This document shows, piece after piece, positions 1-54,528 of a stretch of 64,000 nt of DNA (the stretch's first letter is position 1; the number at the start of each line of letters is the position of its first letter). The notes beneath the pieces are model-generated. The model was not told the DNA's origin, made no database searches, and worked only from the letters and a program-made list of their open reading frames with translations. Position numbers and translations under genes: made by a program. Source of the stretch: Haliotis cracherodii (taxonomy: Eukaryota); the NCBI RefSeq assembly GCF_022045235.1, contig NW_027266267.1:35216001-35280000 (forward strand), in the 5' to 3' direction.

Positions 1-362
1 TATTGAAACAGACCTATGCGATACGACCGGAGTGGGAACATCCAAAATATATATTTTTTGCACTGAAATAAGTAAAAAAGTCAAAAACATGACAACCAAC
101 ACTAACAATAACATGAATATTAAAGTTTGGACAATGTGAAAAAAATAAAAACACACATATTCGTCAAATATGTTATATAAACTAGTGTCCAAAAGAAGGT
201 ATAGAACATAAAAAGTTTTTCCCCATTATGGTAACTTGACAAAATCAATATAAATTAAGACTTGAATATGGCAGATGACAACTCAATGAATTCGGTGAGA
301 AAAAGTGGAAAAAATGACATTATTTGTAAAAATCGTGTATTTTCCCGAAACGACTTTGGGCT

Positions 363-1580
363 ATGAAGAGCGAAATGCACGTGTACAAGAGCTGTATAAA
401 ACTGAGGATACGGCATGCTATGACGACATCAACAAGCAGCACGTTTAACATCTATACAGAGGGAGAGAGCCGTTGGTGGGCGCAACATGGAGCCACCCAC
501 GCCACCATTGCAAGAACGTTTCAGTGCATCCGTGCCACCTTTAACAGATTGATGCAACGCTTGCAACAGACAGGACAGACATCAGACAGTCTTAGAAGCG
601 AGTGACCACGCCCAATTATCGGTCCAATCATCTCCGGAATCGCCTTATTACAGCGACGGTAACGGCAGCGACGGCACTGGGACACAGGGTGAGTCGACGA
701 ATAGTGTGGAGATTAAGAGAACGTGGTATCAGTGCAGGTCGACCCTACTGCGGAGTGATATTAACACGTCAACATCGACGTAACAGATTGACATAGGTCA
801 GATCAAGAGTCTTGGGACGCGTCATGTTCTCTGATGAGAATAGATATTCCTTGTACGTTTAGCGACAAATTGTGTTCCATGTAACGAACTTTTCAGCACT
901 CAAGTACGTACGTGTCTGTGACATGGCTATAAACAACTACCGCTCGGTCAGATACAATAGAAAGGCAACTCGTTTCATAAAAAAATGTTATCTGACGAGA
1001 ATGAGTGCAGTATTCTTTATTGTCAACTTACATATGTCATGATATTAACTTTTACAGTGCATGAATTATTTGCTGTACCATGTATAAGCAATTGTTCACG
1101 AATTCGCATTGACAATCCTGAGCGTGTCGCATTCCCGTCTAAACGTTATGTAATTTCTGAAATGAAACACGTGTACAGGAATTCATTGTTCATAGCCCTT
1201 AGTTTCATGTTAGAGGGACGCGAACATGTTCAAAACTGTACCTACAACACTGAGTTAAACTCCTCGACTCCCTCTTGCTTAATGCTGAAGGCAGTTCAGC
1301 ACATGGAAATGGGAGAGTGAGCTCAAAAGAGAAGCGGTAGCATCACGGTCTGGGGAGGTGTCTGCGGTGATGTCCTTGTTCGTTATTATTCAGGGAAACC
1401 TGAATGCTTAGAGATACAGGGATGAAGTTTTGAGACCCGTTGGGGAATCATTCATTCAGCATCAGTAACGAGGCATTGTCTTCAGCAAGGCGAGACCGCA
1501 TACGACAAGGCTCACATAGAACTTTCTGAATAACGCGAACATTCACGTGTTAACCTGGTCGTTCATAGCAACCGATCATG
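363..1580 (+). mobile_element. Degenerate Tc1-family DNA transposon, interrupted at ~860-1320
   Basis: HTH-like fragments (RLMQRLQQTGQTSD; HLRNRLITATVTA; RLRERGISAGRPYCGVILTRQHRRNRL) and catalytic-region remnants at 1335-1560 (GSITVWGG, GNLNA*RYRDEVLRP). Stops and frameshifts present. Confidence 0.8.
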
Positions 1581-2156
1581 TCATAATGGTCTGCACATAT
1601 TTTGAGGCAGGTTAATTGAAGTGATGTTAGTTTTAGATGACAATCCCGGCGTCACTGATGCATGTCAGCTGTGTTCAGTGGAAACAACGAAATGAATATT
1701 TGTTGCAATTGAAATATGTATAGATGCTAACAAAATAATACAATAATAAATGTGTCATACAAAAAGGTTATTAGATTAAATATATTATAATAAAGCTTGA
1801 ACAATTTAAAACAGCAAAAAGCCATAAAAATGTAAATTCAAAATGTCCTACTAAAGCAAAAAATATTCCGACACGGTTGTTAAAGGTGAATGTGTTACGT
1901 CAGTTCGTAATTTATAAGTGAGTTTGTTATAAAGGCAGTTTACTGTACATTCATATCAACCTAACAGTTACACTCTTTACGTCGAAATAATGTCTAAGTT
2001 CCACACGGGATTAATCACAGGAGGGAGGGAGACATACCAAACAAGCGAACATCCAAAGGAGCAGGGCCCCATTTGAATTTGTTTGTCTGGCAAATGTGAG
2101 CGTTGTGTCGCCAAGAACATTGTCTGCACCGATTAAGTTGACGTCACTTCCTCCAT

Positions 2157-2191
2157 TTAGATTTCACTGTCGGCTTCGGACCGAGAATAAT
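2157..2191 (-). CDS. Gene A possible terminal exon (YYSRSEADSEI*)
   Basis: ttgcag acceptor, phase 1, compatible with the gtaagt donor after 2896. Alternatively the repeat exon reads through to the stop at 2870. Confidence 0.35.
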
Positions 2192-2201
2192 CTGCAACAA
2201 C

Positions 2202-2239
<38 letters not shown>

Positions 2240-5200
2240 AACATCAACATTGTCTTGCTGTCATAAATCCCTAAGGGGGCGGTAGCCCAGTGGTTAAAGC
2301 GTTCGCTCGTCACGCCGAAGACCCAGGTTCGATTCCCGACATGGGTACAATGTGTGAAGCCCATTTATGGTGTCCCCCGCCGTGATATTGCTGGAATATT
2401 GCTAAAAGCGGGGTAGAACCATACTCACTCACACACTCAGTCAGTCATAAATCCCTAAAAGGATGTGACATTTTGTATGTATGTTGTTTTGCGCCACAGT
2501 CAGTAATCGTCCTGATGACATCCTTTAATAGTCGAGTCCGGACCAGGCAAACCAACGGTTAATGTTATGAAAAACTTTCCACGTCGTTCGGCTATGATGA
2601 CACATTAACTACCAAGTTTGTTTTGTTTGTTTGTTGATTAACTGCACATCCAGAAATGTTCTAGCTTTGTGACTGAGGCCTGTAAATCATCGGGTTACTG
2701 ACATCATGAGCATCGATCTACGAAATGCGGATACTATGACATGCATGGACCATGCCACCGATTCTGAGCACCCGATGCCGTTATAATCAACCGAGACAAA
2801 TCACCCAACCCTTTCAGACCCTATTACGACGAACATATATAAGGAGACTCATTCTAACTCCTAGTCCGGTCAATCACACTTCCGTGGATACTTACATGTT
2901 CCGTTCTTTGTTTTCATTGACATATCTGGTACGGCATACAGATCATCAACGTTGACAGCACCGGCTACAGCTGACTGGTGTGTGGGTGTCTTGTCCGGGA
3001 CGACGTACATGTCACTATCGTTGACAGCACCACGTACAGCCGACTGGTGCTCTGGTGTTTTGTCTGGTACGGCATACAGATCGTCAACGTTGAGAGCACC
3101 ACGTACAGCTGACTGGTGCTTGGGTGTCTTGTCCGGGACGGCATACATGTCACCATCGTTGACAGCACCACGTACAGCCGACAGGTGCTTGGGTGTTTTG
3201 TCTGGTGCGGCATACAGATCGTCAACGTTGACAGCACCACGTACAGCCGACTGGTGCTTGGGTGCTTTGTCTGGTATAGCATACAGATCGTCAACGTTGA
3301 CAGCACCACGTACAGCCGACTGGTGCTTGGGTGTCTTGTCCGGGACGGCATACATGTCACCATCGTTGACAGCACCACGTACAGCCGACAGGTGCTTGGG
3401 TGATTTGTCTGGTACGGCATACAGAGCGTCAACGTTGACAGCACCAACTACAGCAGGCAGGTGTACGGTTGTCTTGTCTGGTACGGCAGTTAAATATAGA
3501 ATGATGGTGTTTATATTCCAACAACTAACAACATAATATTCTCCCGAAATTCTTCCCGAAATTATTAAGCTTGATCGAGAAGGCAACACTATAATCACAA
3601 CTCAAATACAATAGTCAGATATGTGAGGAAGTGAAGAACACCACAGCTGTGAAGACTTACTAGTTAAGAGCTCTTTGTTGTCAACAAGTTCAACTTGATT
3701 TCTGAAAAGGATTTTTGTTATAAATTATTGATCGTTTCAACACTGGAATAAATTATTGCAAATAATGATAACCATAACTACATAGAAACCTATACGTAAA
3801 TGTGATCTTAGCAAAGTGGCAGAAAACATTTTCATGAATAATGTTGGTTTATCACATTTGAGACGATACTATCGATCCCATAGCCCCAATCAGAGATACA
3901 CGTTCACACATTAGCTGAGGCGCTGTTTCACTTTCATAGCTTGGAGAGAACAAAATCACACACAATATTGTTTAGGCCAATATAATCTCCAGGAAAGCTC
4001 ATAACAAACTAAAGTTTAGTACATGTCTAGTATTCTATAATGTTTCGTGTTTCATTGTGAATATAACGCAAACTTGTCTGGACTAAATCGTTTGTGAATA
4101 AAGCTTTCCTATGATAAACGAAATCGTTCAACCAATATTACATGGTTAGGTGTTTGTATTACGCAGTGACTGGTTCCTGAATATAACGAATAATAACATT
4201 GTTAACAGTACGTTTTTGAGATGCAAATGAAACTAACAAAACCATTTCCATAACTGTAAGAAATCTGTACCGAAAGCAGAGTCCATTTTCCGTTCTGACT
4301 ATATCAAACACATGTGTTTATGAATCATACTCAATAAATAATGACACAAGGTTTAGATCGTATCCGTCACAATCCTATGCAAAGGCAAGAAAAGACATAC
4401 AGTTGAGCACATTGAAATAACATAACTCTATACGGAAGATGACCCATACGGGCTTTGCGTGATGGAATTCAAGGGTGACATACAGTGGAAGCACTTGACA
4501 CTCTACTCACGTAACATAAAGTGGGTTTTCTGAAAGCTCTGCACCATTGTCTACATCGCTGATAGCTGTGAACAGACATGACGACCAATACCTGTGTTCA
4601 CTGCATAATTTATTATATTTCTGTTGTTAATACTCTTGTGATATGTGTTGATGTATGCTCAAATAAGCGATTTTATGACAAGGATGGATAAGCAAATGAA
4701 TTGACAGATGCGAGCTGTAGCTTTTATGTTTGATGAAACTGTCATTTAATCTTTACATCTGAAATGTTTAACGTTGTCATAATTGTTCTGGTTTGATCTT
4801 CAAATCACTTTACATCAAATCGGAATCTGATACTTAATAATAGTAACATATTCCGACTGCAGAAGTGGAGTTTACCTTGCGTGACTTTTCTCGTTCTTCC
4901 CCTTCTAACAACACCTACACAGATAACGATTATGATGAGGATCATGATGCCACCTCCTGCCCCAGCAGCGATGTACATGGTGTCATCTTGAACATAAAAC
5001 ATATACTGGGTGTCTGGGCCATGGTTAGTGATGCTAATGACGTTCATGTTGATCTTTTAAAGATATGATACATATGGTGTTATCTTAAGGGGAAAACAAA
5101 TACTGGGCTAATATACTGTCCATGTATGAGTATATATACGTTCAGGCATGAGTCCGTGTACATAAACCATGAGTGTAAGTATTGAATGATCTGAGACAAT

Positions 5201-7205
5201 ATGAGCGAGAGGAGAGACCATGCTGCATACACGCAGATGCATTTGATGACCTGAATCTGTATGCTGTGACTATGAAGGATCTATGTCATGAAGTTCTTAA
5301 CTTGATGATGTTTCACCACAAATGATTTAGGTTGATTTGGGAAGTTCAATTTCGAAAGGGAACTGTTATATATATATATATATATTACAGATTCGAGTTA
5401 CCTGTTCTGTTTCAGTACTGTACACAAATCTAGGTTTTAAGCATGGTATGCAGAGATGGAGATTATATGTAATTACTAGATTCTAGAGTTGTCTGTATGT
5501 CCGTATCCGTTGACTGCGATGATGGCCGACTAGCACTGGTATCAAGTGGATCCAATTTGTCCCAATTACTCGAAGGTGTGAAACAGCACGTCGTTAGTAA
5601 TGGGTTAATGATCAATGTTTTTTTCCATGCTATTTGTCTTGATGTGAGAACATTATATCTTACTTTGTTGTTCATAATCGTTCAATTCACAGTAACTAAG
5701 CTAAGTCAATATCCTACTCGAACAAACTGCAGCGATATAATGTCGTGCAAAACCGCAATATCAAGAGCTATGATACACTGCATTAATGCCGTTCAATGCA
5801 CAAAGGTGGTATGTCTTGGATCATGGGTCCGTATACGGTTGTGTTATAAATTCCTGACTGTATCTAAATATCGTACACATCGTAGCTAAAGGTAAATATG
5901 ACGACTAGTACATTACTACCTTGATTATCGTTGCTCGAGGGAGTAGTTATCTTGATAGTTGTAAGTTTTGCCAACGTTGTTGCTGAATCAGTCAGTTGTG
6001 AACCTGTGTTATTGGTAGTCCCTGCCAAGCCTGCCGACATAAATAATAAAAAACAAAACATTATGAAATGTGCTAGCCCACCGCAGAGGACATATAATTA
6101 CACACTACTGTTGTTTGAAATATCTTCTAGATGAGCCAACATCAGTTATGCTCAGTGTAATTGTGAAACGACGTTCGAACATTTTATAAAAGTACAAACT
6201 AAAATGTGTGGATAGCTGGAGACATATTATATACAGAGGATGATTAAAACTATCTGACATTGTATCTGACCTACAATTGTTAAGATGATTTTACCAGCAT
6301 TAATGTGAATGGCATAACAGGTCTCATTGTTTCTCTAAATGTAATATACAAAACTACCTAGAGTACCTTGAATATCTGCATACACAAATAATATAAATTA
6401 ATTGTCGCATTTACCAGCTCAATATCGATGCTCTAGAAGAATCAATTTTATTTTATCGCCTCTGTGGTGAGATGGTTGGAGCGTCTGTCTGACACGATGT
6501 GCCATAACATGATGTGTGAGATAAAAAGGACATGTAGATGTAAATAAAGGAATATATCAGCGCATGGCAAAAAGGATCATACCTAAAGTAAGGTTGTTAC
6601 TGACTCTCTTGCGTTGATCCTCACACCGCCACACAGTGCCAGCATGGAGGTACTGAGTTGTCGTCAGTGTCATGTTGTGCTGGTAGTCACCACAGCTTAC
6701 ACTGACATCCGATGAAGTGTATAGGTCGTAACGATATGCATGAGTATCGCCTGGGCTGTTGGGATGGTGTTTTTGACAGACATTCCCTGCAAACACTGAC
6801 GTGAGAACTCGTACGTCATCCATGTACCAAAAGGTAAACTCTATGTCTATAGTGGTGTTAGCATCGGTGCAGACTAAGGTGACATCATCGTCTGACTGGA
6901 ACTGAGTGAGTTCTAGAAGAAGACCACCTGTAACATTCCAACATACAACCAGCATGAGAAGCATCCAGAACACAAACATGCAGTGACATTCTTTGTCGTT
7001 CTTCATGTACTTACAATGCCCCAATAGCCTTAACATGCAAACACAAAACAGATCTGATGTAAAGTGGTACAATCACTATCAAATTTCATCTACGACATTT
7101 CAATGGTTCTACCCTTCGCATGATTAGAAATTCAAACCTACTGTTATTTGTGTATGCAATCCATCCTATACACAGCAGAGAAATCAGGTGAATCCTTACG
7201 TCCAT
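2157..7205 (-). CDS. Gene A: single-Ig type-I transmembrane receptor with NPxY + 8x YxxP cytoplasmic tail (spliced model)
   Basis: Exons 7205-7142 (signal peptide), 6927-6583 (Ig), possible 6375-6358, 6030-5920 (stalk), 4986-4876 (TM), 4565-4511, 3701-3661, 3477-2896 and possible 2191-2157. All introns GT-AG with compatible phases and no internal stops. Confidence 0.8.
2275..2443 (+). mobile_element. tRNA-derived SINE, family 1 ((CTCA)n tail)
   Basis: A/B-box head (tagcccagtggttaa / ggttcgattcc). 15-bp TSD gtcataaatccctaa at 2260-2274 and 2444-2458. Confidence 0.9.
2896..3477 (-). CDS. Gene A cytoplasmic repeat exon: 8 x 69-bp (23-aa) units, each ending in Y-A/V-x-P-D
   Basis: Within ORF 2870-3598. 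Acceptor ccgtaccag, donor gtaagt. Example units: TPKHQSAVRGAVNVDDLYAVPDK and SPKHLSAVRGAVNDGDMYAVPDK. Confidence 0.85.
3661..3701 (-). CDS. Gene A cytoplasmic microexon (NQVELVDNKELLT)
   Basis: ttttcag acceptor and gtaagt donor; 41 nt, phase 2 to 1. A homologous 41-nt exon lies at 53923-53963 (+). Confidence 0.75.
4511..4565 (-). CDS. Gene A juxtamembrane exon with NPxY (AISDVDNGAELSENPLYVT)
   Basis: ttcacag acceptor and gtgagt donor; 55 nt. Homologous exon at 51937-51991 (+). Confidence 0.8.
4876..4986 (-). CDS. Gene A transmembrane exon
   Basis: DDTMYIAAGAGGGIMILIIIVICVGVVRRGRTRKVTQG: hydrophobic helix followed by basic stop-transfer residues. 111 nt, phase 1-1. Confidence 0.85.
5920..6030 (-). 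CDS. Gene A S/T-rich stalk exon
   Basis: GLAGTTNNTGSQLTDSATTLAKLTTIKITTPSSNDNQG; 111 nt, phase 1-1. Same length in B, C and E. Confidence 0.8.
6583..6927 (-). CDS. Gene A immunoglobulin (V-like) domain exon
   Basis: VTLVC...W(Y)...C...VSVSC...HNMTL...AGTVWRC...SNNLTL. 345 nt, phase 1-1. Confidence 0.85.
7142..7205 (-). CDS. Gene A signal-peptide exon (MDVRIHLISLLCIGWIAYTNN)
   Basis: ATG, hydrophobic core and phase-1 gtaggt donor. A homologous exon precedes all five Ig exons. Confidence 0.75.
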
Positions 7206-9578: not shown

Positions 9579-12500
9579 CTACACAAACACAAATACAATT
9601 TAGAACTTAAGAATCAAGTATTGTGGCACCAATACTTGATATTTTACATATTTTACATTACACAGAGGGTCGCAAGCTGCATCAGTACATTTGATCTCTG
9701 ATACAAGGCCACAAGACATTAATGGTTGGTTTTTTTCTTTTGTATTGAGATATATGTTAGATATACTCAGTAGAAACTACTGTTAGCAATGGAACAAAAC
9801 ACTACGTTGTTGTTCGATTATAAAACAGTAAATTCACATCCAATCAGCACTGATCGTATACGTGGCTTTACAATCAGCTCCGGCTGTAAAACAAAATCGG
9901 CTTATGAATTGGAAACCAAAGGTAATTCTTTTTGTTAAAACTGGACGTGTGGTCCAGTCATCTAGGGCCCCGCAATTCGTTGTCCAATGTTGTGTCTCTT
10001 GGGCACGCTAAAAACCTACGAATACCGCCTCACATTAATACAACTTGAATAATGTGCAAAGCTGCATTGTACACAACTCACTCACTCACGCACTATAAAT
10101 AAAGCATTGGAACATGATGATCGAGCGAAGGACAACAATAGGAACTGACAACTGTAAATAAATGTAAACAAATATATGGAGAAAAGTTTAGAAAGAGTTC
10201 ACCTTGTGTAGCTTTTCCAATTCTTCTTTGCCTCCTCACAAAACACAAACAGAGAACACTTATGATGAAGATCACGACGCCACCTCCCGCCATAACCATG
10301 ATGATTATGGCGTTTTTATTACCTTGAAAAAGAAAAATATGAAAACTAATGCTGGGCTACATGTATGAGTTGTATTGTGCATAGAGGTTGTTGGTATAAG
10401 TATTGAATAATCTAATAAAAGCAAACACATTGATAAGCAGCGAAACCAGTCTTTGTAGGATGTATGCTGATGCTGTTATGGAGCTATTATATGATGTTAT
10501 TTACAGTATACTGTTTCACAAACACCATAAATGGTTTTGGTTATTTCGGAAGCTTTTGAATGGGAGACTGGTATCGCTTTCATATATCAAAGATACGCAC
10601 AACCTGTTCTTTTGCCAAAATGAAGTGTCCTGCAGAGCATGAAGACAGGAGGTATACATAAAAGAACGTGTCTCATAAACTATATTTTACAAATGTTTGT
10701 TCCTCATCAGTCAACGACTGCCATGAAAACCGACTAATATTGGAGTCTGGTGGATTCGGTTTATAATCGTTACCCGAACAAGTATTGTTCTGGGGACACC
10801 AAAAATGGGCTTTACACCTTGTTCAGAACGTCGTTAGTAATGGGTGTCTGTTCCATGATTTATTATTTAGCAGTGACATATTTGTGGAGGTCTTGTATAG
10901 TGTAATATTACATACTTCCATACAGCAGGGTTGACCTGTTATAAATTCTGCAATATCAAGAGCCATAACATACTAAAATATATCACCATGATGTCTGTTT
11001 GAATAAATGCTGGGCCGGTGGGGTAGCTGAGCGGTTAAAGCGGTCGCTCGTCACGCCAAAGAACAGGGTCCGATTTCCCACTTGGGTACATTGTGTGAAA
11101 CCCATTTCTGGTGTCCCCAACCGTGATATTACTGCAACATGTCTAAAAGCAACGTAAAACAATAGTCACTCACTCACTCAAATAAACAAGGCTCAATGCA
11201 TATTGATATTATGTATTAGATCATGTGTCTGTAAAAGAGATTATTGAAAGACCATAATTGTCCTACTGATGTATTACTTCCTAATCCTTTTGATCTCCCG
11301 TTTAGAAAATTGCACTGAGCAGGATCGCAGTTTCAGAAAATCACAAATGTCGAGTGGCGTGAACAATCTTCATCTATGGCGTTGTTTCCAGTGTGACGCT
11401 ATTCCGACCTTAAGCATCAAAAGGATTCAAATGACTTCAACAATGCCATCAGAATGACGGAAACAATGTCTTTTGCACTAGTACACATACATTTTTCATG
11501 AACTCGGTCTTTTCTAACCCTATGGGTAATCATAGTTGTAACATATATAAAACTAAAATACATTGTACTGCCAAACCTTTAGCTTAATACGTATACAAGT
11601 ACATGCCTTATGTCGGCAAAAGTTTAAATATGATAACTGGTGTGAATACAAAGTCACTCTAAATATAATATGCACTGTATGCAAACGTTAGTTTAGTTAG
11701 TTGGTGCACAACTACCATGAATAGCTATGTCTGAAGTGGTCGTTGTTGCTGATGCAATCAGTGGTCGAGTTGACTCATACGCAGTCCCTAGAATGTCTGC
11801 AGACACAAATAATTTATATTAATTGTGACATGTACTGGCTCAATATCTAACACACAATAACTCAAATGAATAATCTATTGTATTTGTGGTCTAATGGCAG
11901 GGGGACTGCCCGGAGAGAAGAAGGTCGGATGTTCGATGTCCGGCCGTGTCATTCTAACAAAAATGTGAAAAGATGGTACCTGTTATTTCCCTGCCCGGTC
12001 CACTGAGTCAAGGGAATAAAACAAGGACTTGTTGCTTCGGAGCGTAATGAGTCTGAGTGGGGTAATCATGTTAAAGTAGTGCATGGTATCTCAGTGGGCT
12101 AGCACTATGAAACCTGCATTAGTNNNNNNNNNNNNNNNNNNNNNNNNNNNNNNNNNNNNNNNNNNNNNNNNNNNNNNNNNNNNNNNNNNNNNNNNNNNNN
12201 NNNNNNNNNNNNNNNNNNNNNNNNNNNNNNNNNNNNNNNNNNNNNNNNNNNNNNNNNNNNNNNNNNNNNNNNNNNNNNNNNNNNNNNTATAAGTGCAATA
12301 ATCTTGAACGCAACGATAAATTCCATTTCAGATCACATCTTAAAGTATTGATGTATCTTTGTACCGTGATGTATTTATTGATCATGGATAACGAATGAGT
12401 TACATCTGCATTGATACATGTACAGTGTGTCACAACATGCTGCGTGAGATTAAAAGAACATGAAAGTGTAAATAAATGAATATATGCGCACGAAATGAAA

Positions 12501-14037
12501 CAGATAGGTCATACCTTAAGTAAGGTTGTTACTGACTCTCTTTCCATGCTATTTGTCTTGATGTGAGAACATTATATATTTTACTTTGTTGTTCATAATC
12601 GTTCATTTATTCACAGTAACTAAGCTAAGTCAGTATCCTATTCGAGCAAACTGCAGCCATAAAATATCGTGTGAAAAACGCAATATCAAGTGCGCAATAT
12701 TAGTGTCATACATTCCTGACTGTTTCTAAATATCATATACATCGTAGCCAAATGTTAGTATGACGACCAGTACACTACCGTGATTATCGTTCCTCGGGGC
12801 AGTAGTTATCTTGATAGTTGTAAGTTTTGACAAGGTTGTTGCTGCTTCGGTCAGTTGTGAAGTTGCCTTTATGTTAGTCCCTGCGAAGCCTGCCGACATA
12901 AATGATACAGAAATAATCATGAGGGAACAGAATTACACACGACTATAGTTTGAATAATCTTCTAGGTGAGCCAACATCAGTTATGCTTAGTGTGTTTTTT
13001 AAAATGACGTTCGAACATTTTACATATAGAGTTACTAACTAAAATGTGTGGATAGCTAGAGACACATAGTATACAGGGGATCATTAAAACTATCAAGTAT
13101 TGTATTTGAACTATTATTGTTCCACCAGCATTAATGTGAATGGCATAACTGGTAAAACTCAATACAATGTTTCTCTTAATATAATATGCATCGTTAGTTT
13201 AACAGACACACAACTACCTTTTGAATGGCCGCAGACATAAATAATAAATAATATAAATATATTATGGCATTTACAATCTCAATATCGATACGTCTCTGTG
13301 GTCAGATAGTTAAAGCATCTGTCTGACACGATGTGTCATAACATGATGTGTGAGATCAAAAGGAGACGTTGATTTAAAAAAAGGGAATATGAGTGCATGA
13401 CAAAAAGATCATACCTAAAGCAAGGTTGTTGCTTACTCTCTTGCGTTGATCCTCACATCGCCACACAGTCCCAGCTTGGAGGTATTGAGTTGTCGTTAGA
13501 GTCATGTTGTGTTGGGTGTAACCACAGCTTACACTGACATCCGTTGAAGTGTATAGGTCATAACCATATGTATAAGTATCGCCTGAGCTTTTTGGTGGGT
13601 TCTTTGCACACGTTGTCCCCACAAACACTGACGTGAGAACTCGTACGTCATCCATGTACCATTTTGTAAACTCTATGTTGATAGTGGTGTCAGTTGCGGT
13701 GCAGACTAAGGTGACATCATCGCCTGACTTGAACTGAGTGAGTTCCAGAGGGAGACCACCTGCAACATTCCAACATACAACCAGCATGAGTAGCATCCAG
13801 AACACAAACATGCAGTGACATTCTTTGTCGTTCTTCATGTACTTATAATGCCCGAATAGCTTTAACATGCAAACACAAAACAGATCGGATATATAGTGCT
13901 ACAATCACTATCAAATTTCACCTACGACATTTCAATGGTTCTACCCTTCGCATGATAAGAAATTCAAACCTACTGTTATTTGTGTATGCAATCCATCCTA
14001 TACACAGCATAGTAATCAGGTGAATCCTAATGTCCAT
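9394..14037 (-). CDS. Gene B: single-Ig type-I receptor with ITAM-like/ITIM-like tail (model crosses gap 12124-12287)
   Basis: Exons 14037-13974 (SP), 13759-13415 (Ig), 12889-12779 and 11796-11716 (stalks), 10322-10203 (TM), probable microexon 9883-9838, terminal 9578-9394. The cytoplasmic microexon phases are not fully resolved. Confidence 0.7.
10203..10322 (-). CDS. Gene B transmembrane exon
   Basis: NKNAIIIMVMAGGGVVIFIISVLCLCFVRRQRRIGKATQG; 120 nt, phase 1-1. Confidence 0.85.
11012..11180 (+). mobile_element. SINE family 1, diverged copy
   Basis: Homologous to 2275-2443. A duplicate sits at the equivalent position at 18041. Confidence 0.8.
11716..11796 (-). CDS. Gene B second stalk exon (ILGTAYESTRPLIASATTTTSDIAIHG)
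   Basis: 81 nt, phase 1-1. Homolog at 49866-49946 (+). Confidence 0.65.
11885..12340 (+). mobile_element. SINE family 3 spanning the assembly gap
   Basis: Homologous to 52847-53205 on both sides of the N-run. Confidence 0.7.
12124..12287. other. Assembly gap (N-run)
   Basis: Run of N bases. Confidence 1.
12779..12889 (-). CDS. Gene B stalk exon
   Basis: GFAGTNIKATSQLTEAATTLSKLTTIKITTAPRNDNHG; 111 nt. Confidence 0.8.
13415..13759 (-). CDS. Gene B Ig domain exon
   Basis: 345 nt, phase 1-1, paralog of 6583-6927. Confidence 0.85.
13974..14037 (-). CDS. Gene B signal-peptide exon (MDIRIHLITMLCIGWIAYTNN)
   Basis: 64 nt with a phase-1 donor. Confidence 0.75.
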
Positions 14038-31129: not shown

Positions 31130-31836
31130 CCAGGGTTCGATGTCACGCAATTACCCAAGCAACCTTGGTATGACCAGAGTTTGACGACACGCAATCAAGC
31201 AATCAAGCCTTGTATGACTAGGGTTCGATGTCACGTAATCCACTAATCAACCTTGGTATGACCAGGGTTTGATGACACGCAATCAAGCAATCAACCCTTG
31301 TATGACTAGGGTTCGATGTCGCGCAATCAACTAATCAACCTTCGTATGACCAGGGTTTGATGATACGCAATCAAGCAATCAACCCTGGTACGGCCAGGGT
31401 TCGATGGCACGCAATCAACCAAACAGCCTTGGTATGACCAGGGTTCGATTTCACGCAATGAACCAATCGACCTTGGTATAACCAGGGTTCGATGAAGCGC
31501 AACCAACCAAGTAACCTTGGTTTGATAAGGGTTCGATGACACGCAATCATGAAATCAACCTTGATATGACCAGGGTTTGCTGGCATGCAATCAACCAATC
31601 AACCTTGGTATGACCACGGTTCGATGTCACGCAATCAACCAAGCAGCCTTGGTATGACCAGGGTTCGATGTCACGCAAACAACCAAACAGCCTTAGTATG
31701 ACCAGGGTTGGATGTAAAGCAATCAACCAAACAACCTTGGTATGACCAGGGTTCGATGACACGCAATCAACCAAACAGCCTTGGTATGACCAGGGTTTAA
31801 TGCCACAAAGTTGAACAAGTAACCTTGGTATGACCC
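31130..31836. repeat. 44-bp minisatellite, ~16 copies
   Basis: Unit cagggttcgatgtcacgcaatcaaccaagcagccttggtatgac. Confidence 0.9.
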
Positions 31837-46200: not shown

Positions 46201-49200
46201 GTATCTGTAGGAATAGGGATGCTTTGGCTTATGATGTTGTTGACAGTGATCCCGCTCGGAGACACGCCCATAGTAAGTTAGAAGCTGAGTAATATGCTGG
46301 TCGTCACTGAGACTGATATGCTTTTAGTGATTGATATTGTGGGGGATATGTTGGTAGTGATCAAAATGTTCGGGTTATGTTGGTATTGATCGGGATGCAT
46401 ATATCGGAATAGGCTGGTAGGCATTGAGGTGACTGGCGATACGTTGTCAGTGGTGAAAATGCTTGGGAATATATCGATAGTGATCAAGATGTTGTGGTAT
46501 ATGTCGGTGCTAATTTGAATACGTGGGGATACTGTGGTACGTATTGAGATGCTAGGGGATTCATTTGTAGGAATACTGATACTGGGTGATATGTCAGGTA
46601 ATGATCACGACGATGGGTGATACGTCTGAAGTGATTATGATACTGGAGGATATGCGGGCTGTCAAAGAGATCCTGGAGATCTGTCGGTTGTGAAGGTGAT
46701 CCTGGAAATGTGTCGGTTGTGAAGGTGATCCTGGAAATGTGTCGGTTGTGAAGGTGATCCTGGAATTGTGTCGGTTGTGAAGGTGATCCTGGAAATGTGT
46801 CGGTTGTGAAGATGATCCTGGAAATGTGTCGATTGTGAAGGTGATCCTGGAAATGTGTCGGTTGTGAAGGTGATCCTGGAAATGTGTCGGTTGTGAAGGT
46901 GATCCTGGGGATATGTCTGTTTTGAATGGAATACTTGGGATATGCCGGTAGTGATCATAATGCCAAGGGGTGTTCCAACAGTGAAATGGATGATTAGGGT
47001 TTATGCGGGAATGATCGGAATGCTTGTTTTCACTAACGATCAGGCCTCAAGACGTTCGAATCAGATTACCAATTTTGCTGCTATGGGATTATTTTTAACA
47101 ACATTTTATTCAGAAAGTGTCTTTAAGCTTGCAATGCAAACATTTGTTTATGTTCTGAAACTTGATTCGAAGATGTGATATTGTATGTGGGTGTTTATCA
47201 AAACTTTATTTTGTAAAATACTTTGAAAACGTATGGCATTATAAAGAAGCATGTAAGACCTAAAGTTGAAACTCGAATATTATTTCATTTCACATGTTTT
47301 ATAGTGGATTATATTTATATGCATTGTAAAAACATTGTAAGTCAAGTGAACAATTACTTTGCAAGACATGCATTTCGATGTTAGGATTGATATGCATGTT
47401 TGGGTTAAGAAAAATATACTTCCAAATCCTCTTGGAGGTAATGGAATTAGATTCAAATTCATCACATTCTAGGATGTTTTATTAAAATGCAAATATGCTG
47501 ATAGACGTCATGCCCTCTTAACATCGTGTTCTTAGATAATCTAACATTCAATATCGTGGTCAGTTCATATTTGTGTCTACGTATATATTACCAATAGTTA
47601 TAGACCATCATCATTATAGTCAAAATCTCCACACAAAACGGTACTATATTTTTAAAAGTCATATCTTCTCTTCATAGTATTATGTTTTGTAAAATACTAA
47701 AATACTTTATATGTTGTTGTTTCTGTCACCATGATGGATGATGGTGATGGATTTAATGAAAATACTCAATATGAATGCATATTTCCATTTCAATGCCGTC
47801 AGCAACGTTCTGATGTCCTTATGAAATGCAGTTACTGTCAGAACCATTGTACTTATTGTGAAGACAAGTAACATTTGCATCTTCAAGTAACACCCTGTTA
47901 TGGATCCAAATAATTCATTGATGTTAATGTTAATTCCATGCCGGTGTCCAATATGCAATGATAATAATGATAATGTGTGGATAAAGGAGTTTGGACAAGC
48001 ACGAATATCTCGACTCTGGTATGAACAAGCAAACGCTAACTATAGAGGGGGAACTCTCTGGCAATTTGGAATCCATTGCCTGTATTTCTGGAACGTTATA
48101 TCCTGGCCTAAATACAAAGAGATTTTTTTGGATCGGGTTGTAAGGGTCAGTGATGGTTGATTACAGCATCGTTTTTCTGTATATGGGCATTACCCTTTCG
48201 AAGCGTCGATTTTGCACTGAAACGCGTCGAAATTGATTTTGGAATAAAACTGGGCTAGGGTAACGTGACACGTTAACCTTGGACGAGACACTGAATGTGT
48301 CCATTTCTACAGACGAACACAGCAATTATTTAAAATATATCACTTTGGTACACTTGTACGATTTTATTTTGTATTTATTTTTGTCAATAACTGGTGACAT
48401 TGTCTCTACTTTGTCGTTGCCACATTCATTCATTTTCACTACTAGTTTTAAACATTTCTCTGTGATAAATCTAGTTATTTTACTGCCCATCGTTGGCAGG
48501 TTTTTATACGTTTTCAAAGTATTTCTGATATTTAACCTTTGATAGTCACGATATGGCTGAAATATTGCCGATGTGACTTAAAACTTAACTCACTCACTCA
48601 CTCACTCATTCATTTTCACAATCTGACTGTTGACAACGTGTTGTCATTTCATTCACTCGCCACAGTCGCATTCTCTTCATATAAGCATGTAGTACGTCAC
48701 ATACATATATAGGACTGAGCAAAGATTGTAAGTTTTATATCTCTATATAGTAGCATGAACGGTGATAACTCCTGGCAGGCAGTCCTGGAAGGCAACTAGC
48801 ATCGGGGAGATCTGGTTTAGCCAAGTCAGAAATTCCATACAGTGCAAAACAAGAGCATGCAATTGTTTGCTTTTTGGGGTTCAGATTCACTCCCCAGTCA
48901 TAAAGCGTCTTGATCGGCTAATATTGACACGACAGTACTGTTACTCGAGAGCAACTATTATAGTATGCACTGGTATTGAATTTTTGGATATTGATTATTT
49001 CCTGGCCAAATATTCATTCTTATTGATTACCCACCCATGTTGGTATATTGTAAAACACATTGGCTGACACTGCCGCTAAAAGAAGTTGACACTCGTTTTA
49101 ACTTCTCTTTTTTAAGCAGGTTATGCTATATTTCTACTCACTCACTCAGACATACTTCGTGTTGTGAAAAAACCGATGTCAATTCCTTGAAATGTTAAAC

Positions 49201-51196
49201 CATCATTCAATAGTGTATAGGTGAATGGTAAAATATCAAAAGTTGACATCAGTGGAAGGTAAAATTTTAACAGTTGACTTCAGTGAAATATTAAATATTA
49301 TCAATTGACATCAGTGGAAGGTTGAATATCAAAAGTTGACTTCAGTGAAAGATTCAATATTAATAGTCGACTTTAATGAAAGTTTAGATATTACTAGTTG
49401 ACTTCAGTCAAAGGTTAAATTTTAATAGTCGACTTTAGTGAAAGGTTAGATATTAATAGTTGACTTCAGTGGAAGGTTAAATATTAATAGTCGACTTTAG
49501 TGAAAGGTTAGATATCAATAGTTGACTTCAGTGAAAGGTTAAATATTAATAGTCGACTTTAGTGAAAGGTTAGATATTAATAGTTGACTTCAGTGAAAGG
49601 TTAAATATTAATAATCGACTTTAGTAAAAGGTTAGATATTAAAAGTTGACATCAGTGGAAGGTTAAATATCAAAAGTTGACTTTACGGGTATGTGTGTTA
49701 CGGACTTCTTATTTTAGTTCGTAATAACCGTAGTTCGTTATAAGTATATGTACAGCATATTTACAACAAATGGTCGGGACTAAAAATATGTTTGTTATAT
49801 CGGTCAGTTCGTTATAAGCGTGTTCGTTAAAAACATAGATTACTGTATATGATTTTTGTATGCAGACATTTCAGAGGCTACTGAAGAGTCAACTACACCA
49901 CTGACTGATTCAGCAACAACGATCACTACAGACAGCGATACTCATGGTAGTTTTGTATCAGGTAAACATACGATGTATATTATATGTAGAGAAACATTTA
50001 TTCATACTAGTTATGTCATTCACATTTATGACGACGAAAGCCATTTTAATAACCACACGTCGGATACAATATTTAAAGTTTGTATTATCTTTTGTATATT
50101 ATATGTCTCCAGCTACCCACAGTTTAGTTAATAACTCGATCTGTATGCAAATGTCCCAACGTACGCTCAAAACACCCAAACATACAGTAATGTGTTATGT
50201 TATGTCCTCTGAGGTGGGCTATTTGGTTTTTTTTATTATTTGTCAGCAGGTTTTCCAGGGACTGGCTATAAGACAAGTTCACAACTGATTGATTCAACAA
50301 CAACGTTGGCAAAACTAACATCTATCAAGATAACTACTGCCCCGGAAATCGATAACAAAGGTACATGTACCCGTCGTCAACTAACCTATGGGTACGATGT
50401 GTATGATGTTTAGAAATATGCATGAATGTATAACAAAACCATATACTGACGCAGGATCCACGACGGACCACCAATGTGCATTGAACGCCATTTATCTGAA
50501 CAGAGAGTATTGTGATATTCTATATCACAGCAGGCCCGTGACGATTCCGGGGCAGAGTAGGTCTTCAGCAACCCATGCTTGCCGTAAAAGGCGACTACGC
50601 TTGTCATAAGAGGCGACTAACGGGATCTGGTGGTCAGGCTCGCTGACTTGGTTGATGCATGTCATCAGTCCTAATTGCATGGATTGATGCTCATGATATC
50701 AATCACTGGATTGTCTGGTCCAGACTCGATTATTTACAGACCGCCGTCATATAGCTGGAATATTGCTGAGTGCAACGTTAAACATCAAACCAACCAACCA
50801 ACCAACCATATCACAGCTCCAGATATTACGTTTTTTTGCACGGTATTTCTATTGCTGCAGTTTGTTCGAATGCAGATACTGACTTAGCTAAGTCACTGTG
50901 AGTGAATAACGATTATGAATAACAAAGCAAGTCATATTGTAGTAACACCACAAGTAGCATGGCAAAAATAGCATGGACCATACACCCATTACTAACGACG
51001 TGCTCCTTCACGTCATCGGGTGTAGAGGACAAATTGGATCCATTGGATTTCAATGTTAGTCGGCCATCATGGCTATCATAGGCTACTGATATACAGACAC
51101 ATCTTGTATGTAGTAGTTACATACAATATGCATCTCTGCTTACCATGCCCAAAACCTAGTGCTTTTACATTACTACAAACGATCAGGCTACTCGTA

Positions 51197-51260
<64 letters not shown>

Positions 51261-54200
51261 GATCACTTTTCCCTTTCGAAAACAAAACATCCCAATCAAA
51301 AACAACCTAAATTATTTATGGTGAAACATTATCAAATAAATTACTTCATATCATAGCTCCATAATAGTCTCTTCATACAGACGGACGCCTCCAACTTCAT
51401 CTGCGTGTACAGCATGGTTCCTCTTCATATGACGCTTATGTTGTCTTAGAATATTGAACACTTACACTCAATGGGTATATACATGGTCTCATACTAATAT
51501 AAACTCATACATGTGCCAATTTCACGAAGCGAATTTGTTTTCTTTTCAAGATGAAGCCATATACATCTCGGTCGGGGCGGTAGTTTGCGTCGTGCTCTTT
51601 ATTATAATCGTTATCTGTGTATGTGTTGTGAGGAAGAGAAGAATGGGAGTAGTAACAGAAGGTAAACTACGTCTTTTATGACGGTTGGAACATATAGCAG
51701 TTATTTGCCATCATATTCTAATTTGAACTTGATCATTCATGTCAACGTTAAGCAGTACAAATATAATGATTAAATGTCAGTTTCATAAACGTAATAATCG
51801 ACAGCTCTTTATTTCAGCTTTTAATAAAAAAAAGTATTTGAATATACATCCACAACCATCAACCAAAGCATTAAAAATAGAAATATTATAAATAATGCAG
51901 TGAACAAATTGAAATGATCGTCATGTATGTTCACAGCTCACAGCGATGCAGACAATGGTGCAGAGCTAACAGCAGCCCCAACCAATGCTACGTGAGTAAA
52001 ATGTTAATTACTTCCATATTCCCGTATGAGTCGCCAAAGATATATCGATTATCTCATATCGTTCAATAACGATCAAATAGCCAATTCGCTTCCACTTATT
52101 TACCCACCTAACCCGAAATAAAGGAGATTTATTTAGATCTATGCAGAAAGTTTCAGAGTGACAAAACACTTTCCACAACTTTCTAATAGTCCACTGTTCT
52201 TTTATGTAGAGCAATATTCCTACAGCTCCAGCTCTTGGTGTCTATATTGCACAACTTTTGAGGTACAATCGAGCATGCCCTTTCTGCCAAGAATTCAAGG
52301 AGCGTCATACACCTCTTGCTCAGAAGCTGTTTGATCAAGGTTACAACATTCAAAGAAACATTCAAGGCCAAAGTTTTCAAAACGTTTATGGTAGACATGT
52401 TGAGGACAAAACTGACGCAGCAGTGACAAAATTGATGTTCGATCCAATTCCCTATTTGGACTTGTACCATATGGTCCCGTGTTCTTTTCAGGTGATCAAT
52501 TGACTTGTCTTTGTGCGTGTTTATGACGGGTATCGCCGATGGGACTAGTAACACTCAACTTTTCACAAACACCTGGCCGTGGTCTTCTCACTATTTGATA
52601 GTGATTGATAAACACATAATCATGATACAGTCGGAATCGAACAATCGACTGTGCTTAAGGCGGAGGTTTCTTATGAATATGGAGTAGGAATTAATTGATT
52701 GTTATCACTATATAACTATCCACGGAGATGGTTGACCTTGTCGCCTTCAATTGAAATGTTTATATTTACAGAATTAAAATTCACATCGACGGACGCATCA
52801 ACAGCCCTGATCACAGGTAATTCACTTGAATCCTTAATAACTTCAAGACCGCCTCCGGGGTCTAATGGTAGAGCGTCCGCCCGGACAGCGGAAGGTCCGG
52901 GATTCGATCTCCGGGCGCGTCCTACCAAAATACGTTAAAAGATAGTACTTGTTGTTGCCCTGTCTGGCGCTCGGCATGAAGGGGCTAAAACAAGGACTGG
53001 TTGGCTCGCATTCAGTATACTGTTTCTGAGTGGGGTATTCATGTTAAACTGCGGCATGGTATCTCAGTGAGCTAGCACTATAAATCGGCATCAGTCCGGA
53101 CTAGTACAAGCAGCCACACAAACAGACACACGAACATGCACGTCGCTATAGAAGCGCAATAATCTTGGACGCGACGTTAAACCCCATTTCACCTCACCTC
53201 ACCTGAAAACTTCTAAATTTGTTTTTATAATGCAGCTGCTTGAAAAAAAGCGCACATTGTGTATCCTCAAGTGGTTGAACTCGACCTTTTATAAGTTCTA
53301 ACATATTTTCAAATTTGTATTGTATTAATAAGTATGATTGTTTGATTACATGTTGTTGAAGGACGATGGGCTATAAATAGACACACTTGTTCTTGATATT
53401 ACAGGCAACGCCCAACACCTATTCGGATACGATGACACAAGTCACCCATCAATAATATCCCCTTAAATGTGAACTTTCTTAACTTGTTTGTTTGTTGTTA
53501 AACGCCGCCCTCAGCAACATTCCAGCTATATGACGGCGGTCTGTAAAATAATCGAGCCTGGATCAGACAATCCAGTGATTGGCATCATGATCATCGATCC
53601 ACCCAATTGGGATCGATGACATGTATCAGCGAGCGTGACCACCCGATCCCGTTAGTCGCCTCTTACGACAAGCATAATCGCTTTTTACGGGAAGCAGGGG
53701 TTGCTGAAGATCTATTCTACCCCGGAATCGTCACGGGTCTTAAAAGTGAACAAAACCCATTGTTCATGTAAATGTTACGGACTTATTCCTGCCACTTTGC
53801 GAATGTGTAAAGATCACATTTTCGTATAGGTTTCTATGTAATTTTGGCTATTATTATTTGCAATTATTTATTCCAGAGTTGAAACATGCAATAACTTTAA
53901 AATGAATTATATTCCTTTTCAGAAACCAAGTTCAACCTGGTGACAAGAAAGAGCACTTAACTAGTAAGTCTTCACAGTTGTGGTGTTCTTCACTTCCTCA
54001 CACATATGACTATTGTATTTGAGTTGTGATTATAGATAAAGCGTTGCCTTCTCGATGAACCTTAATAATTTCAGAAAGAATATCTAGGGAAAATAATATG
54101 TTGTTACTTGTTGGAATATAAACACCATGATTCTATATTTAACTGCCGTATCAGACAAGACACCCGAACACCTGCCTGCTCTTGACAGTGCTGTCGACGT

Positions 54201-54528
54201 TGGCGATCTGTTTGCCGTACCAGACAAGACACCCGAACACCTGCCTGCTCTTGACGGTGCTGTCGACGATGGCGATCTGTTTGCCGTACCAGACAAGACA
54301 CCCGAACACCTGCCTGCTCTTGACGGTGCTGTCGACGTTGGCGATCTGTTTGCCGTACCAGACAAGATACCCGAAAACCTGCCTGCTCTTGACAGTGCTG
54401 TCGACGTTGGCGATCTGTTTGCCGTACCAGACAAGACACCCAAACACCTGCCTGCTCTTGACGGTGCTGTCGACGTTGGCGATCTGTTTGCCGTAAACAG
54501 AACCTTACCGTCGTCTCATTTTATATGA
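42006..54528 (+). CDS. Gene E: single-Ig type-I receptor with a tyrosine-free A-type tail (candidate decoy)
   Basis: Exons 42006-42072, 42337-42696, 45803-45907, 49866-49946, 50250-50360, 51551-51661, 51937-51991, possible 52772-52816, 53923-53963 and 54155-54528. GT-AG, phase compatible, open. Confidence 0.75.
42337..42696 (+). CDS. Gene E Ig domain exon
   Basis: 360 nt, phase 1-1, close paralog of the D Ig exon. Confidence 0.85.
43400..44300. repeat. Degenerate ~30-bp minisatellite (inverted homolog of 36985-37700)
   Basis: gatgctgggg(g)atat..gtagtgatc motif. Confidence 0.75.
44632..44918 (-). mobile_element. SINE family 4
   Basis: Homologous to 23225-23494; TSD tattttga. Confidence 0.85.
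45803..45907 (+). CDS. Gene E stalk exon (D-type, single copy)
   Basis: DFPETSRTDQTLPSRPSTVQQLPLKSTQILEGSTQG; 105 nt. Confidence 0.75.
46665..46910. repeat. 29-bp minisatellite, ~8 copies
   Basis: Unit tgaaggtgatcctggaaatgtgtcggttg. Confidence 0.9.
49230..49683. repeat. 31-bp minisatellite with alternating 62-bp higher-order structure
   Basis: aatagttgacttcagtgaaaggttaaatatt alternating with aatagtcgactttagtgaaaggttagatatt. Confidence 0.9.
49866..49946 (+). CDS. Gene E stalk exon (ISEATEESTTPLTDSATTITTDSDTHG)
   Basis: 81 nt; an alternative in-phase donor follows 49961. Confidence 0.7.
50250..50360 (+). CDS. Gene E stalk exon (A-type)
   Basis: FPGTGYKTSSQLIDSTTTLAKLTSIKITTAPEIDNKG; 111 nt. 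Confidence 0.75.
50533..50808 (+). mobile_element. SINE-like family 2, full length
   Basis: (ACCA)n tail; flanking atatcacag duplication. Confidence 0.85.
51202..51256. repeat. (TA)n microsatellite
   Basis: Directly visible. A shorter homologous tract lies in the gene A intron at ~5367-5384. Confidence 0.95.
51551..51661 (+). CDS. Gene E transmembrane exon
   Basis: DEAIYISVGAVVCVVLFIIIVICVCVVRKRRMGVVTEG; 111 nt. Confidence 0.85.
51937..51991 (+). CDS. Gene E juxtamembrane exon lacking NPxY (AHSDADNGAELTAAPTNAT)
   Basis: 55 nt with the same splice sites as A 4511-4565. Confidence 0.8.
52100..52430 (+). mobile_element. Penelope-like retroelement RT C-terminal fragment
   Basis: SNIPTAPALGVYIAQLLRYNRAC...FKERH...QKLFDQGY...YGRH, typical of this region in Penelope-like elements. 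Confidence 0.7.
52847..53205 (+). mobile_element. SINE family 3 (tRNA head + V-domain-like core), best-preserved copy
   Basis: A/B boxes; core accaaaatacgttaaaagatagtacttgttgttgccctgtctggcgctcggcat; (CACCT)n tail. Confidence 0.85.
53484..53740 (-). mobile_element. SINE-like family 2
   Basis: Homology to 50533-50808. Confidence 0.85.
53923..53963 (+). CDS. Gene E cytoplasmic microexon (NQVQPGDKKEHLT)
   Basis: 41 nt, homolog of 3661-3701. Confidence 0.75.
54155..54528 (+). CDS. Gene E terminal repeat exon: 5 x 69-bp units with FAV(P) instead of YAVP
   Basis: TPEHLPALDGAVDVGDLFAVPDK repeats. The upstream intron is homologous to that of gene A. Confidence 0.8.

Follow-up and report, generated by a model that had tools for sequence, protein, structure and literature searches.

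We analyzed a window of 64,000 nucleotides (nt) from the genome of the abalone Haliotis cracherodii (contig NW_027266267.1, positions 35,216,001 to 35,280,000) that holds a cluster of related receptor-like genes, designated here A to E. In gene A, a minisatellite of eight 69-bp units makes up a coding exon on the minus strand in which every unit carries one tyrosine-proline motif. We place slightly better than an even chance on the full interpretation, namely that this array is a genuine coding exon of a receptor tail and that the tail serves as a phosphotyrosine docking platform. As such, the tail is a lineage-specific variation on a known theme, the multivalent tyrosine-motif tail. The features that most deserve attention are the confinement of the minisatellite to one exon, a core motif shared with a sea urchin, and a paralogue in the same cluster that has phenylalanine at every motif tyrosine.

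Tandem Repeats Finder detects the array with a period of 69 at positions 2925-3488 (8.2 copies, 82% matches, no indels, score 722), together with a weaker higher-order period of 207 bp (2.7 copies, 86%). When cut at 23 codons, the exon resolves into eight in-frame 69-bp or 23-residue units in the order L-M-L-L-M-L-M-L, exactly as an earlier description made from the letters alone (hereafter the sequence-only reading) had it, with the L-type core NVD[DA]LYAxP and the M-type core ND[GS]DMY[AV]VP. That reading also held that the tyrosine and the proline three residues after it are fixed while other positions drift. Both residues are indeed unchanged in 8 of 8 units, but they are not the sole fixed positions, as 10 of the 23 are invariant (K1, H5, A8, V9, G11, A12, N14, Y19, P22, and D23). 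What sets the tyrosine-proline core apart is that distant paralogues and a second phylum conserve it, not the pattern of change within the array. A single one of 69 nt separates units 2 and 5, and identity among units 3, 4, and 6 is 64-65 of 69, so at least part of the array is very young. At its edges, the exon is bounded by an AG acceptor before 3477 and a GTAAGT donor after 2896.

The acceptor itself sits within a decayed partial unit, as the end of the preceding intron (3478-3495, minus strand) resembles a unit tail with Thr in place of Tyr. In addition, all five L-type units (within 2924-3475) contain the string CCAG|AC at the same phase, whereas M-type units read CCGGAC and are without it. 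Use of this site in any L-type unit as an acceptor would yield an in-frame protein with fewer units.

In the frame that the sequence-only reading assigned to it, the array codes for protein. An open reading frame (ORF) at 2870-3598 (minus strand, 242 aa) contains the array in that frame, which is the only one open throughout the exon; the other two minus-strand frames hold stops. The ratio of nonsynonymous to synonymous differences (pN/pS), summed over all pairs of gene A units, is 0.43 in this frame versus 1.49 and 1.07 in the shifted frames, and for the five full units of a distant array on the same contig (locus L004) it is 0.38 versus 1.72 and 0.87; these values are descriptive because the unit pairs are non-independent, although the contrast between frames does draw on one shared set of differences. 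Purifying selection thus appears in the array's frame only. The motif tyrosine is encoded by TAT seven times and by TAC once and the proline by CCA five times and by CCG three times, indicating that both residues have been retained through synonymous change, and further synonymous differences between the subtypes occur at the adjoining Val and Lys codons. Splice phases agree with this frame, and RefSeq paralogue models from three Haliotis species splice the NPxY exon, a microexon, and the repeat exon in the frame of gene A. The condition that the sequence-only reading had named as refuting it, use of a different frame, does arise in one RefSeq isoform of gene E (P0039), which enters its array through an acceptor specific to E.

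The remaining exons of gene A were mapped by tblastn with RefSeq paralogue proteins, each boundary was inspected, and the model was assessed exon by exon, unjoined (Table 1). All splice sites are AG/GT, and the phases agree throughout, from start to stop. Exon 1 is 86-91% identical over 22 aa to P0042 and P0045, the transmembrane exon is 76% identical over 34 aa to P0002, and a 13-residue segment homologous to the 41-nt microexon is found in the RefSeq models P0001, P0002, and P0006. From this exon order, gene A is predicted to encode a lineage-specific abalone type I membrane receptor with a signal peptide, one V-set immunoglobulin (Ig)-like domain, and a Ser/Thr-rich stalk, followed by a single membrane span and a tail on the cytoplasmic side. 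Because the array is positioned after the membrane span and the basic residues that follow it, it belongs to the cytoplasmic tail, in keeping with the receptor-tail placement proposed by the sequence-only reading. The NPLY motif that the same reading had put upstream of the array is present as well, within a small exon of its own.

Table 1. Predicted exons of gene A and repeat arrays of the gene A kind in the window and elsewhere in the assembly. Positions without a prefix are those of the window.
Feature	Position	Strand	Size	Remarks
Exon 1, start codon and signal peptide	7142..7205	-	21 codons + 1 nt	Phase 1 donor; ATG, GT donor
V-set Ig-like ectodomain exon	6583..6927	-	345 nt	Phase 1-1; ORF and splice sites
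Ser/Thr-rich stalk exon	5920..6030	-	111 nt	Phase 1-1; tblastn to P0042, P0001, P0006; AG/GT
Transmembrane exon	4876..4986	-	111 nt	Phase 1-1; hydrophobic span then RRGRTRK; ORF
NPLY exon	4511..4565	-	55 nt	Phase 1-2; NPLY at 4527-4516
Microexon	3661..3701	-	41 nt	Phase 2-1; splice sites and phase
Repeat exon	2896..3477	-	582 nt	Phase 1-1; units at 3475-2924, then 9 codons
Last exon, coding part	2157..2191	-	11 codons including junction codon	Starts phase 1; stop TAA 2159-2157
Gene A array			8 units	
L002 array			4 units	First unit degenerate
Gene E array	54144..54495	+	5 units (5.1 copies)	96% identity; Phe for Tyr throughout
L005 array	Within locus G000:C4:35186362-35189598		3 units	
L006 array	Within locus G000:C4:35201755-35204991		3 units	
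L004 array	About 26 Mb off, same contig		7 units	
L007 array			About 14 units	Leu for Pro; Asn for Tyr in some units

The assignment of the ectodomain rests on structure prediction. An AlphaFold2 model of the ectodomain exon, built from a 14-row family alignment, has a predicted local distance difference test score (pLDDT) of 82.6 and a predicted template modelling score (pTM) of 0.79. Searched with Foldseek, it returns 92 PDB matches at E<=0.001, of which the top 50 are nearly all nanobodies or VH domains with template modelling (TM) scores of about 0.5-0.66, the best of them at about 0.6-0.65. The Ig exon matches no Pfam family at E<=1. The domain is thus predicted to have a V-set Ig fold with an atypical sequence. 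For the repeat exon, AlphaFold2 with a 12-row alignment gives a mean pLDDT of 51.6, a pTM of 0.13, and essentially no secondary structure, so the tail is predicted to lack a fold. When the repeat, Ig, membrane, and stalk exons were scanned with Pfam, nothing meaningful emerged: the only hits were repeat-driven matches to unrelated families, one just above its cut-off but without a stretch that passed alone. The spore-protein matches on the repeat exon, none with a stretch that passed alone, were set aside as repeat artefacts. In the ESM Atlas, the repeat exon found no usable match.

The predicted gene A protein ends in S-E-I, and contig cover reaches at least position 2087, in the 3' untranslated region. 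The RefSeq models that reach the last exon share these final three residues, and the homologous last exons of L002, L005, P0001, and P0003 also end S-E-I. Paralogues and other species end Glu-Tyr-Ser-Glu-Ile, whereas gene A, nine bases shorter, ends Asp-Ser-Glu-Ile, so that the C-terminal tyrosine is gone and the final three residues are kept. Tyr-Ser-Glu-Ile also occurs internally in tails of the B/C type.

To the extent that they derive from RNA, contigs from four sequencing runs, aligned to positions 1-6000 of the window at 90% likeness, bear on whether the exon is transcribed. Record 2 of X1 (275 nt) covers 3065-2892 and then 2187-2087, skipping 704 nt, and its joint, read as 2896|2191, is a canonical GT..AG intron that connects the repeat exon to the last exon. 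Record 7 of X1 stops at 3478 and record 23 of X2 at 3477, the acceptor, and records 30 and 31 of X4 fall within the repeat exon. X16 is DNA-like, with a contig that passes unbroken through 3474-3673. The contigs are 2-5% divergent from the window and, given this difference, may come from other individuals or from close species. They offer modest but direct support for the presence of the exon in mRNA, spliced to the last exon.

We compared the units with published motif patterns. The ELM patterns were used as printed in PMC8073766. LIG_SH2_NCK_1 matches 7 of 8 units as a pattern, which is not a measure of binding, and unit 7 fails on account of Val at +1. PMC4532999 quotes Ile/Val/Leu-Tyr-x-x-Pro/Phe as the consensus of Abl substrates, and five of the eight units match it, these being all of the L type; the three M-type units have Met at -1. 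In the M-type slot, the residue preceding the tyrosine differs across copies (Met, Lys, or Asn), and this variation suggests that the slot may be a weaker kinase site. An eight-residue segment around NPLY, 14 residues past the end of the membrane exon, fits the printed ELM LIG_PTB pattern, in line with the sequence-only reading of NPxY as a PTB motif. The same reading had taken the units for Abl/Src substrates bound by Crk, Nck, or Abl SH2 domains; its Nck and Abl-substrate parts hold as pattern matches, but its Crk part does not, with 0 of 8 units matching. Taken together, the published patterns lean toward Nck and Abl over Crk. A PDZ class I ligand consists of Ser or Thr, any residue, and a hydrophobic residue at the C terminus, and the S-E-I of gene A fits this pattern.

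On these grounds, the tyrosine-proline motif of the units probably docks signaling proteins. Receptor clustering would lead kinases of the Src or Abl type to phosphorylate the unit tyrosines. The phosphorylated units would then form a multivalent platform that recruits an SH2 adaptor with a preference for Pro at +3. By published patterns Nck fits best, ahead of Crk, and the number of units would set the valency. NPxY would recruit a PTB adaptor, and the C terminus may bind a PDZ domain.

Several observations weigh against this interpretation. The Crk pattern fails in every unit because +4 is Asp and the pattern, as printed, excludes Asp, Glu, and Trp at that position. The low confidence of the tail model possibly reflects the shallow 12-row alignment. 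The four runs are guessed to be RNA, none being recorded as such, with word shares of 0.04-0.22; the splice joint of X1 record 2 is ambiguous by 4 nt and canonical only in the placement given above; contig depth over the repeat exon is low (0-15.5), and some intron bins are covered too. A further stalk exon of the paralogue models was sought in gene A between the Ig exon and the stalk exon, and no intact copy was found there. Protein searches returned no model for gene A, which may have been left without annotation, classed as a pseudogene, or missed because it falls beyond the length range covered. Finally, gene E has phenylalanine for tyrosine in an otherwise kept motif, a pattern that a phosphate-independent motif would produce as well.

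Gene E is central to this last point. All five of its units have Phe at the motif tyrosine with the remaining motif kept, NPxY is lost, and the whole tail has zero tyrosines. Its array translation is letter-for-letter that of RefSeq protein P0006, and of its two RefSeq isoforms, X1 follows the motif frame and X2 (P0039) follows another, entered through an internal acceptor created by an E-specific change. One could therefore propose that [LM]-[YF]-A-x-P-D-K binds some other module, for example an endocytic or cytoskeletal adaptor, with the tyrosine hydroxyl dispensable. The annotated all-Phe protein speaks for this proposal, as does conservation that reaches P-D-K, past Tyr-x-x-Pro. However, the units of E are 96% identical, so a single Tyr-to-Phe change may have spread by duplication too recently for decay to be visible, and the additional loss of the NPxY tyrosine and of any tail tyrosine looks like the loss of a tyrosine-based function. 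Furthermore, the tyrosine codon varies synonymously, and Tyr stands in every intact tallied unit, those of the sea urchin included, except in E and in the degenerate first unit of L002/P0001, in a tally that omits L007, where some units have Asn for Tyr. We consider phosphate-independent docking unlikely. Under the phosphotyrosine interpretation, E would be a tyrosine-free and signaling-dead decoy or a decaying copy.

An equally unlikely account, in our judgment, is that gene A is a copy that has recently died or fallen silent, with its minisatellite expanding in a pseudogene and its signs of constraint inherited from functional ancestors. The missing protein model, the stalk exon that is not intact, the lost tyrosine of a C-terminal motif conserved in the paralogues, and the thin RNA support would all fit. 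Yet each of the eight identified exons is open, their splice sites are canonical and their phases agree, and the absent stalk exon leaves the frame intact because the neighboring exons are all phase 1-1, as are the stalk, membrane, and repeat exons. Moreover, the RNA-like contigs respect the exon ends, one of them being spliced, and the differences among the units of A, including those that arose after duplication, are biased to synonymous ones.

A non-coding array, one that lies in an intron or untranslated region and owes its open frame simply to a period of 69 bp (divisible by three), is very improbable: stop-free repeats do open frames on both strands (for example, a 194-aa plus-strand ORF and a 160-aa ORF in the second minus frame) and P0039 reads the array of E in another frame, but pN/pS falls below 1 in one frame only in two independent arrays, splice sites with matching phases lie exactly at the array edges where RNA-like contigs end, homologous exons are coding in the RefSeq models of three species, and the peptide motif recurs in a sea urchin protein. 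It is just as improbable that the eight units fold into a structured repeat domain with structural rather than docking residues, since, although 10 of 23 positions are invariant and about half of the unit is common with distant L004, more than a bare linear motif needs, AlphaFold2 predicts essentially no secondary structure, the sea urchin and ENA proteins keep the core only with spacers that vary in length and sequence, and the unit number ranges from 3 to 14.

The docking interpretation gains a wider context from the spread of the core. The element common to the arrays is acidic-[LM]-Y-A-x-P-D-K, which is kept in L002, L004, L005, and the Haliotis RefSeq tails. A receptor from the sea urchin Diadema setosum, whose ectodomain we take, by eye, to resemble SRCR and WSC domains, has five occurrences of this core in its tail, set among unrelated spacers, and two unnamed ENA proteins contain it as well. 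An ESM Atlas query with the sea urchin tail gave a sub-threshold lead only (0.87), to a mollusc-rich cluster. The repeat as such was not found outside abalones in protein searches. A full-text literature search for the core motif in several spellings gave no match, and one for abalone Ig receptors with tyrosine tails gave nothing relevant, with no passage in PMC13229213.

A genome-wide search at the DNA level with the six-residue core yielded 134 matches, 34 of them unlisted, versus 98 for a reversed control; given this control, isolated matches are mostly chance and only clusters are meaningful. Four of six fetched contexts are tail-like exons with further tyrosine motifs (L014, L015, L017, and L018), and in L014 and L018 these exons are 62 aa long with a second Tyr-Ala-Ser motif. 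The other two were set aside, L016 as a different protein context and L013 as non-coding. At G000:C4:12577672-12976889, on the same contig as the window, at least nine single Tyr-Ala-Lys-Pro-Asp-Lys coding patterns are evenly scattered 15-40 kb apart, L014 and L018 being the two inspected among them, and this interval probably holds another tandem receptor family with one motif per gene.

It is possible, although we would not bet on it, that acidic-[LM]-Y-A-x-P-D-K is an old, unnamed tyrosine signaling motif of invertebrate surface receptors, with a role like that of the classical immunoreceptor motifs. Because the motif is common to unrelated ectodomains, the abalone V-set Ig domains and other tails on the one hand and the sea urchin SRCR/WSC protein on the other, it might have one conserved reader across protostomes and deuterostomes. 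Copy numbers of 3-14 would make valency evolvable, and one paralogue would have turned into a tyrosine-free decoy.

Relatives of gene A are all annotated as "uncharacterized protein", namely P0001, P0002 (H. rufescens), P0003, P0004 (H. rubra), and P0006 (H. cracherodii). HMMER returned 37 matches, of which 12 were inspected; P0007, P0013, P0015, P0020, and P0034 are unrelated repeat proteins, and lower matches were treated as composition matches. The window itself contains the ectodomain exon five times, one copy being on the plus strand and the other four on the minus strand, joined to differing tails: the repeat tail of the A type, the B/C tails with other tyrosine motifs, the tail of D, and the tyrosine-free tail of E. 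A search of the abalone's own genome gave 23 matches at E<=0.001, seven of which are arrays of the gene A kind (Table 1); we set aside L008-L012 and the rows below them, which carry stops or belong to other repeats. The only full-length, 100% copy of the gene A array in the assembly is the window's own, and the short-read contigs cannot span it.

Unit number among paralogues and species takes the values 3, 4, 5, 7, 8, and 14, with three or four units in the RefSeq tails of other Haliotis species. The common three-unit layout (L-type, M-type position, L-type) looks ancestral. From such a version the array of gene A grew by recent unequal crossing-over of 69-bp units. Expansion in A involved the second and third unit types and in E the first, and the two expansions are thus independent.

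Among these arrays, L007 (G000:C4:8762919-8766350) lies about 6 kb from L004, with its array on the minus strand at about 1399-2517 of the locus; its units read Tyr-x-x-Leu, with Leu at +3, and long frames are open on both strands. L005 and L006 have two extra A's after the last unit relative to gene A, and because these shift the donor frame, their last exon would be out of frame unless compensated upstream.

Several known systems share parts of this design. One is the nephrin-Nck-N-WASP pathway, in which, according to PMC4238058 and PMC6857567, an Ig-superfamily receptor binds Nck through phosphotyrosines in its tail. Like the predicted gene A product, nephrin is a type I receptor of the Ig superfamily whose unstructured tail has several tyrosine motifs of the ELM Nck class, and tail valency is the key variable. 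Unlike gene A, with its one V-set domain and eight near-identical motifs duplicated in one exon, nephrin has a long Ig/FnIII ectodomain. The abalone motif is also different, with Ala at +1, Pro at +3, and Asp-Lys next. We found no homology in sequence between the two proteins, and Nck binding by the gene A tail is a prediction.

The sequence-only reading had called the array p130Cas-like. In p130Cas (BCAR1), Tyr-x-x-Pro sites that are Src/Abl substrates serve as SH2 docking sites, and many such sites stand in an unstructured region, as they do in all eight units of gene A. This is a likeness of working principle, not of membership: p130Cas is a cytosolic scaffold with an N-terminal SH3 domain, a serine-rich region, and a C-terminal CAS helical bundle, whereas gene A would encode a membrane receptor, and a Pfam scan of four gene A exons found no SH3 or CAS domain. 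The label stands as an analogy only, with neither CAS architecture nor homology behind it.

Helicobacter CagA and Chlamydia Tarp carry duplicated tyrosine-phosphorylation segments whose copy number varies between strains. There too, tandem duplication of a tyrosine-site segment alters the count of SH2 docking sites, but these are pathogen effectors that mimic host motifs, whereas gene A is the animal's own receptor and its variation is seen between paralogues and species. The human DRD4 exon-3 48-bp coding variable number tandem repeat similarly multiplies a short proline-containing docking motif in the cytoplasmic part of a receptor; it does so in a loop of a seven-span protein and with SH3-type motifs, in contrast to the tyrosine motifs in the single-span tail of gene A. 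The vertebrate paired or multigene Ig receptor clusters KIR, LILR, SIRP, and Siglec resemble the window in their tandem arrangement of related V-set heads joined to differing tail types, but they share no homology with it past the Ig fold, and the abalone tail motif is not a classical immunoreceptor motif.

It is well known that tails multiplying a docking motif set valency; here this is done by minisatellite dynamics in a single exon of an animal's own receptor. The natural series of 3 to 14 units, together with a neighboring all-Phe version, offers a test of how array valency shapes adaptor clustering, and the core shared between mollusc and sea urchin hints at an unrecognized invertebrate signaling motif. 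Abalones include a critically endangered species struck by a bacterial disease, according to PMC9709981 and PMC11518883. An immune role for this abalone-specific family, if true, would be of practical interest.

Other features of the window concern the neighbors and the introns of gene A. P0045 corresponds to gene B (Ig exon 13413-13796) and runs from the ectodomain and a short stalk into a tyrosine tail without a membrane exon, which could represent a soluble isoform or an effect of the run of N at 12124-12287. Further tandem arrays lie in or near genes D and E, at 31130-31797 (period 44, 15 copies), 46669-46926 (period 29, 9 copies), and 49221-49685 (period 31/62, 15 copies). The last intron of gene A contains, at 2281-2432, a very abundant short interspersed repeat with many copies in the window, and depth over it climbs into the hundreds of thousands or millions in each of the four runs.

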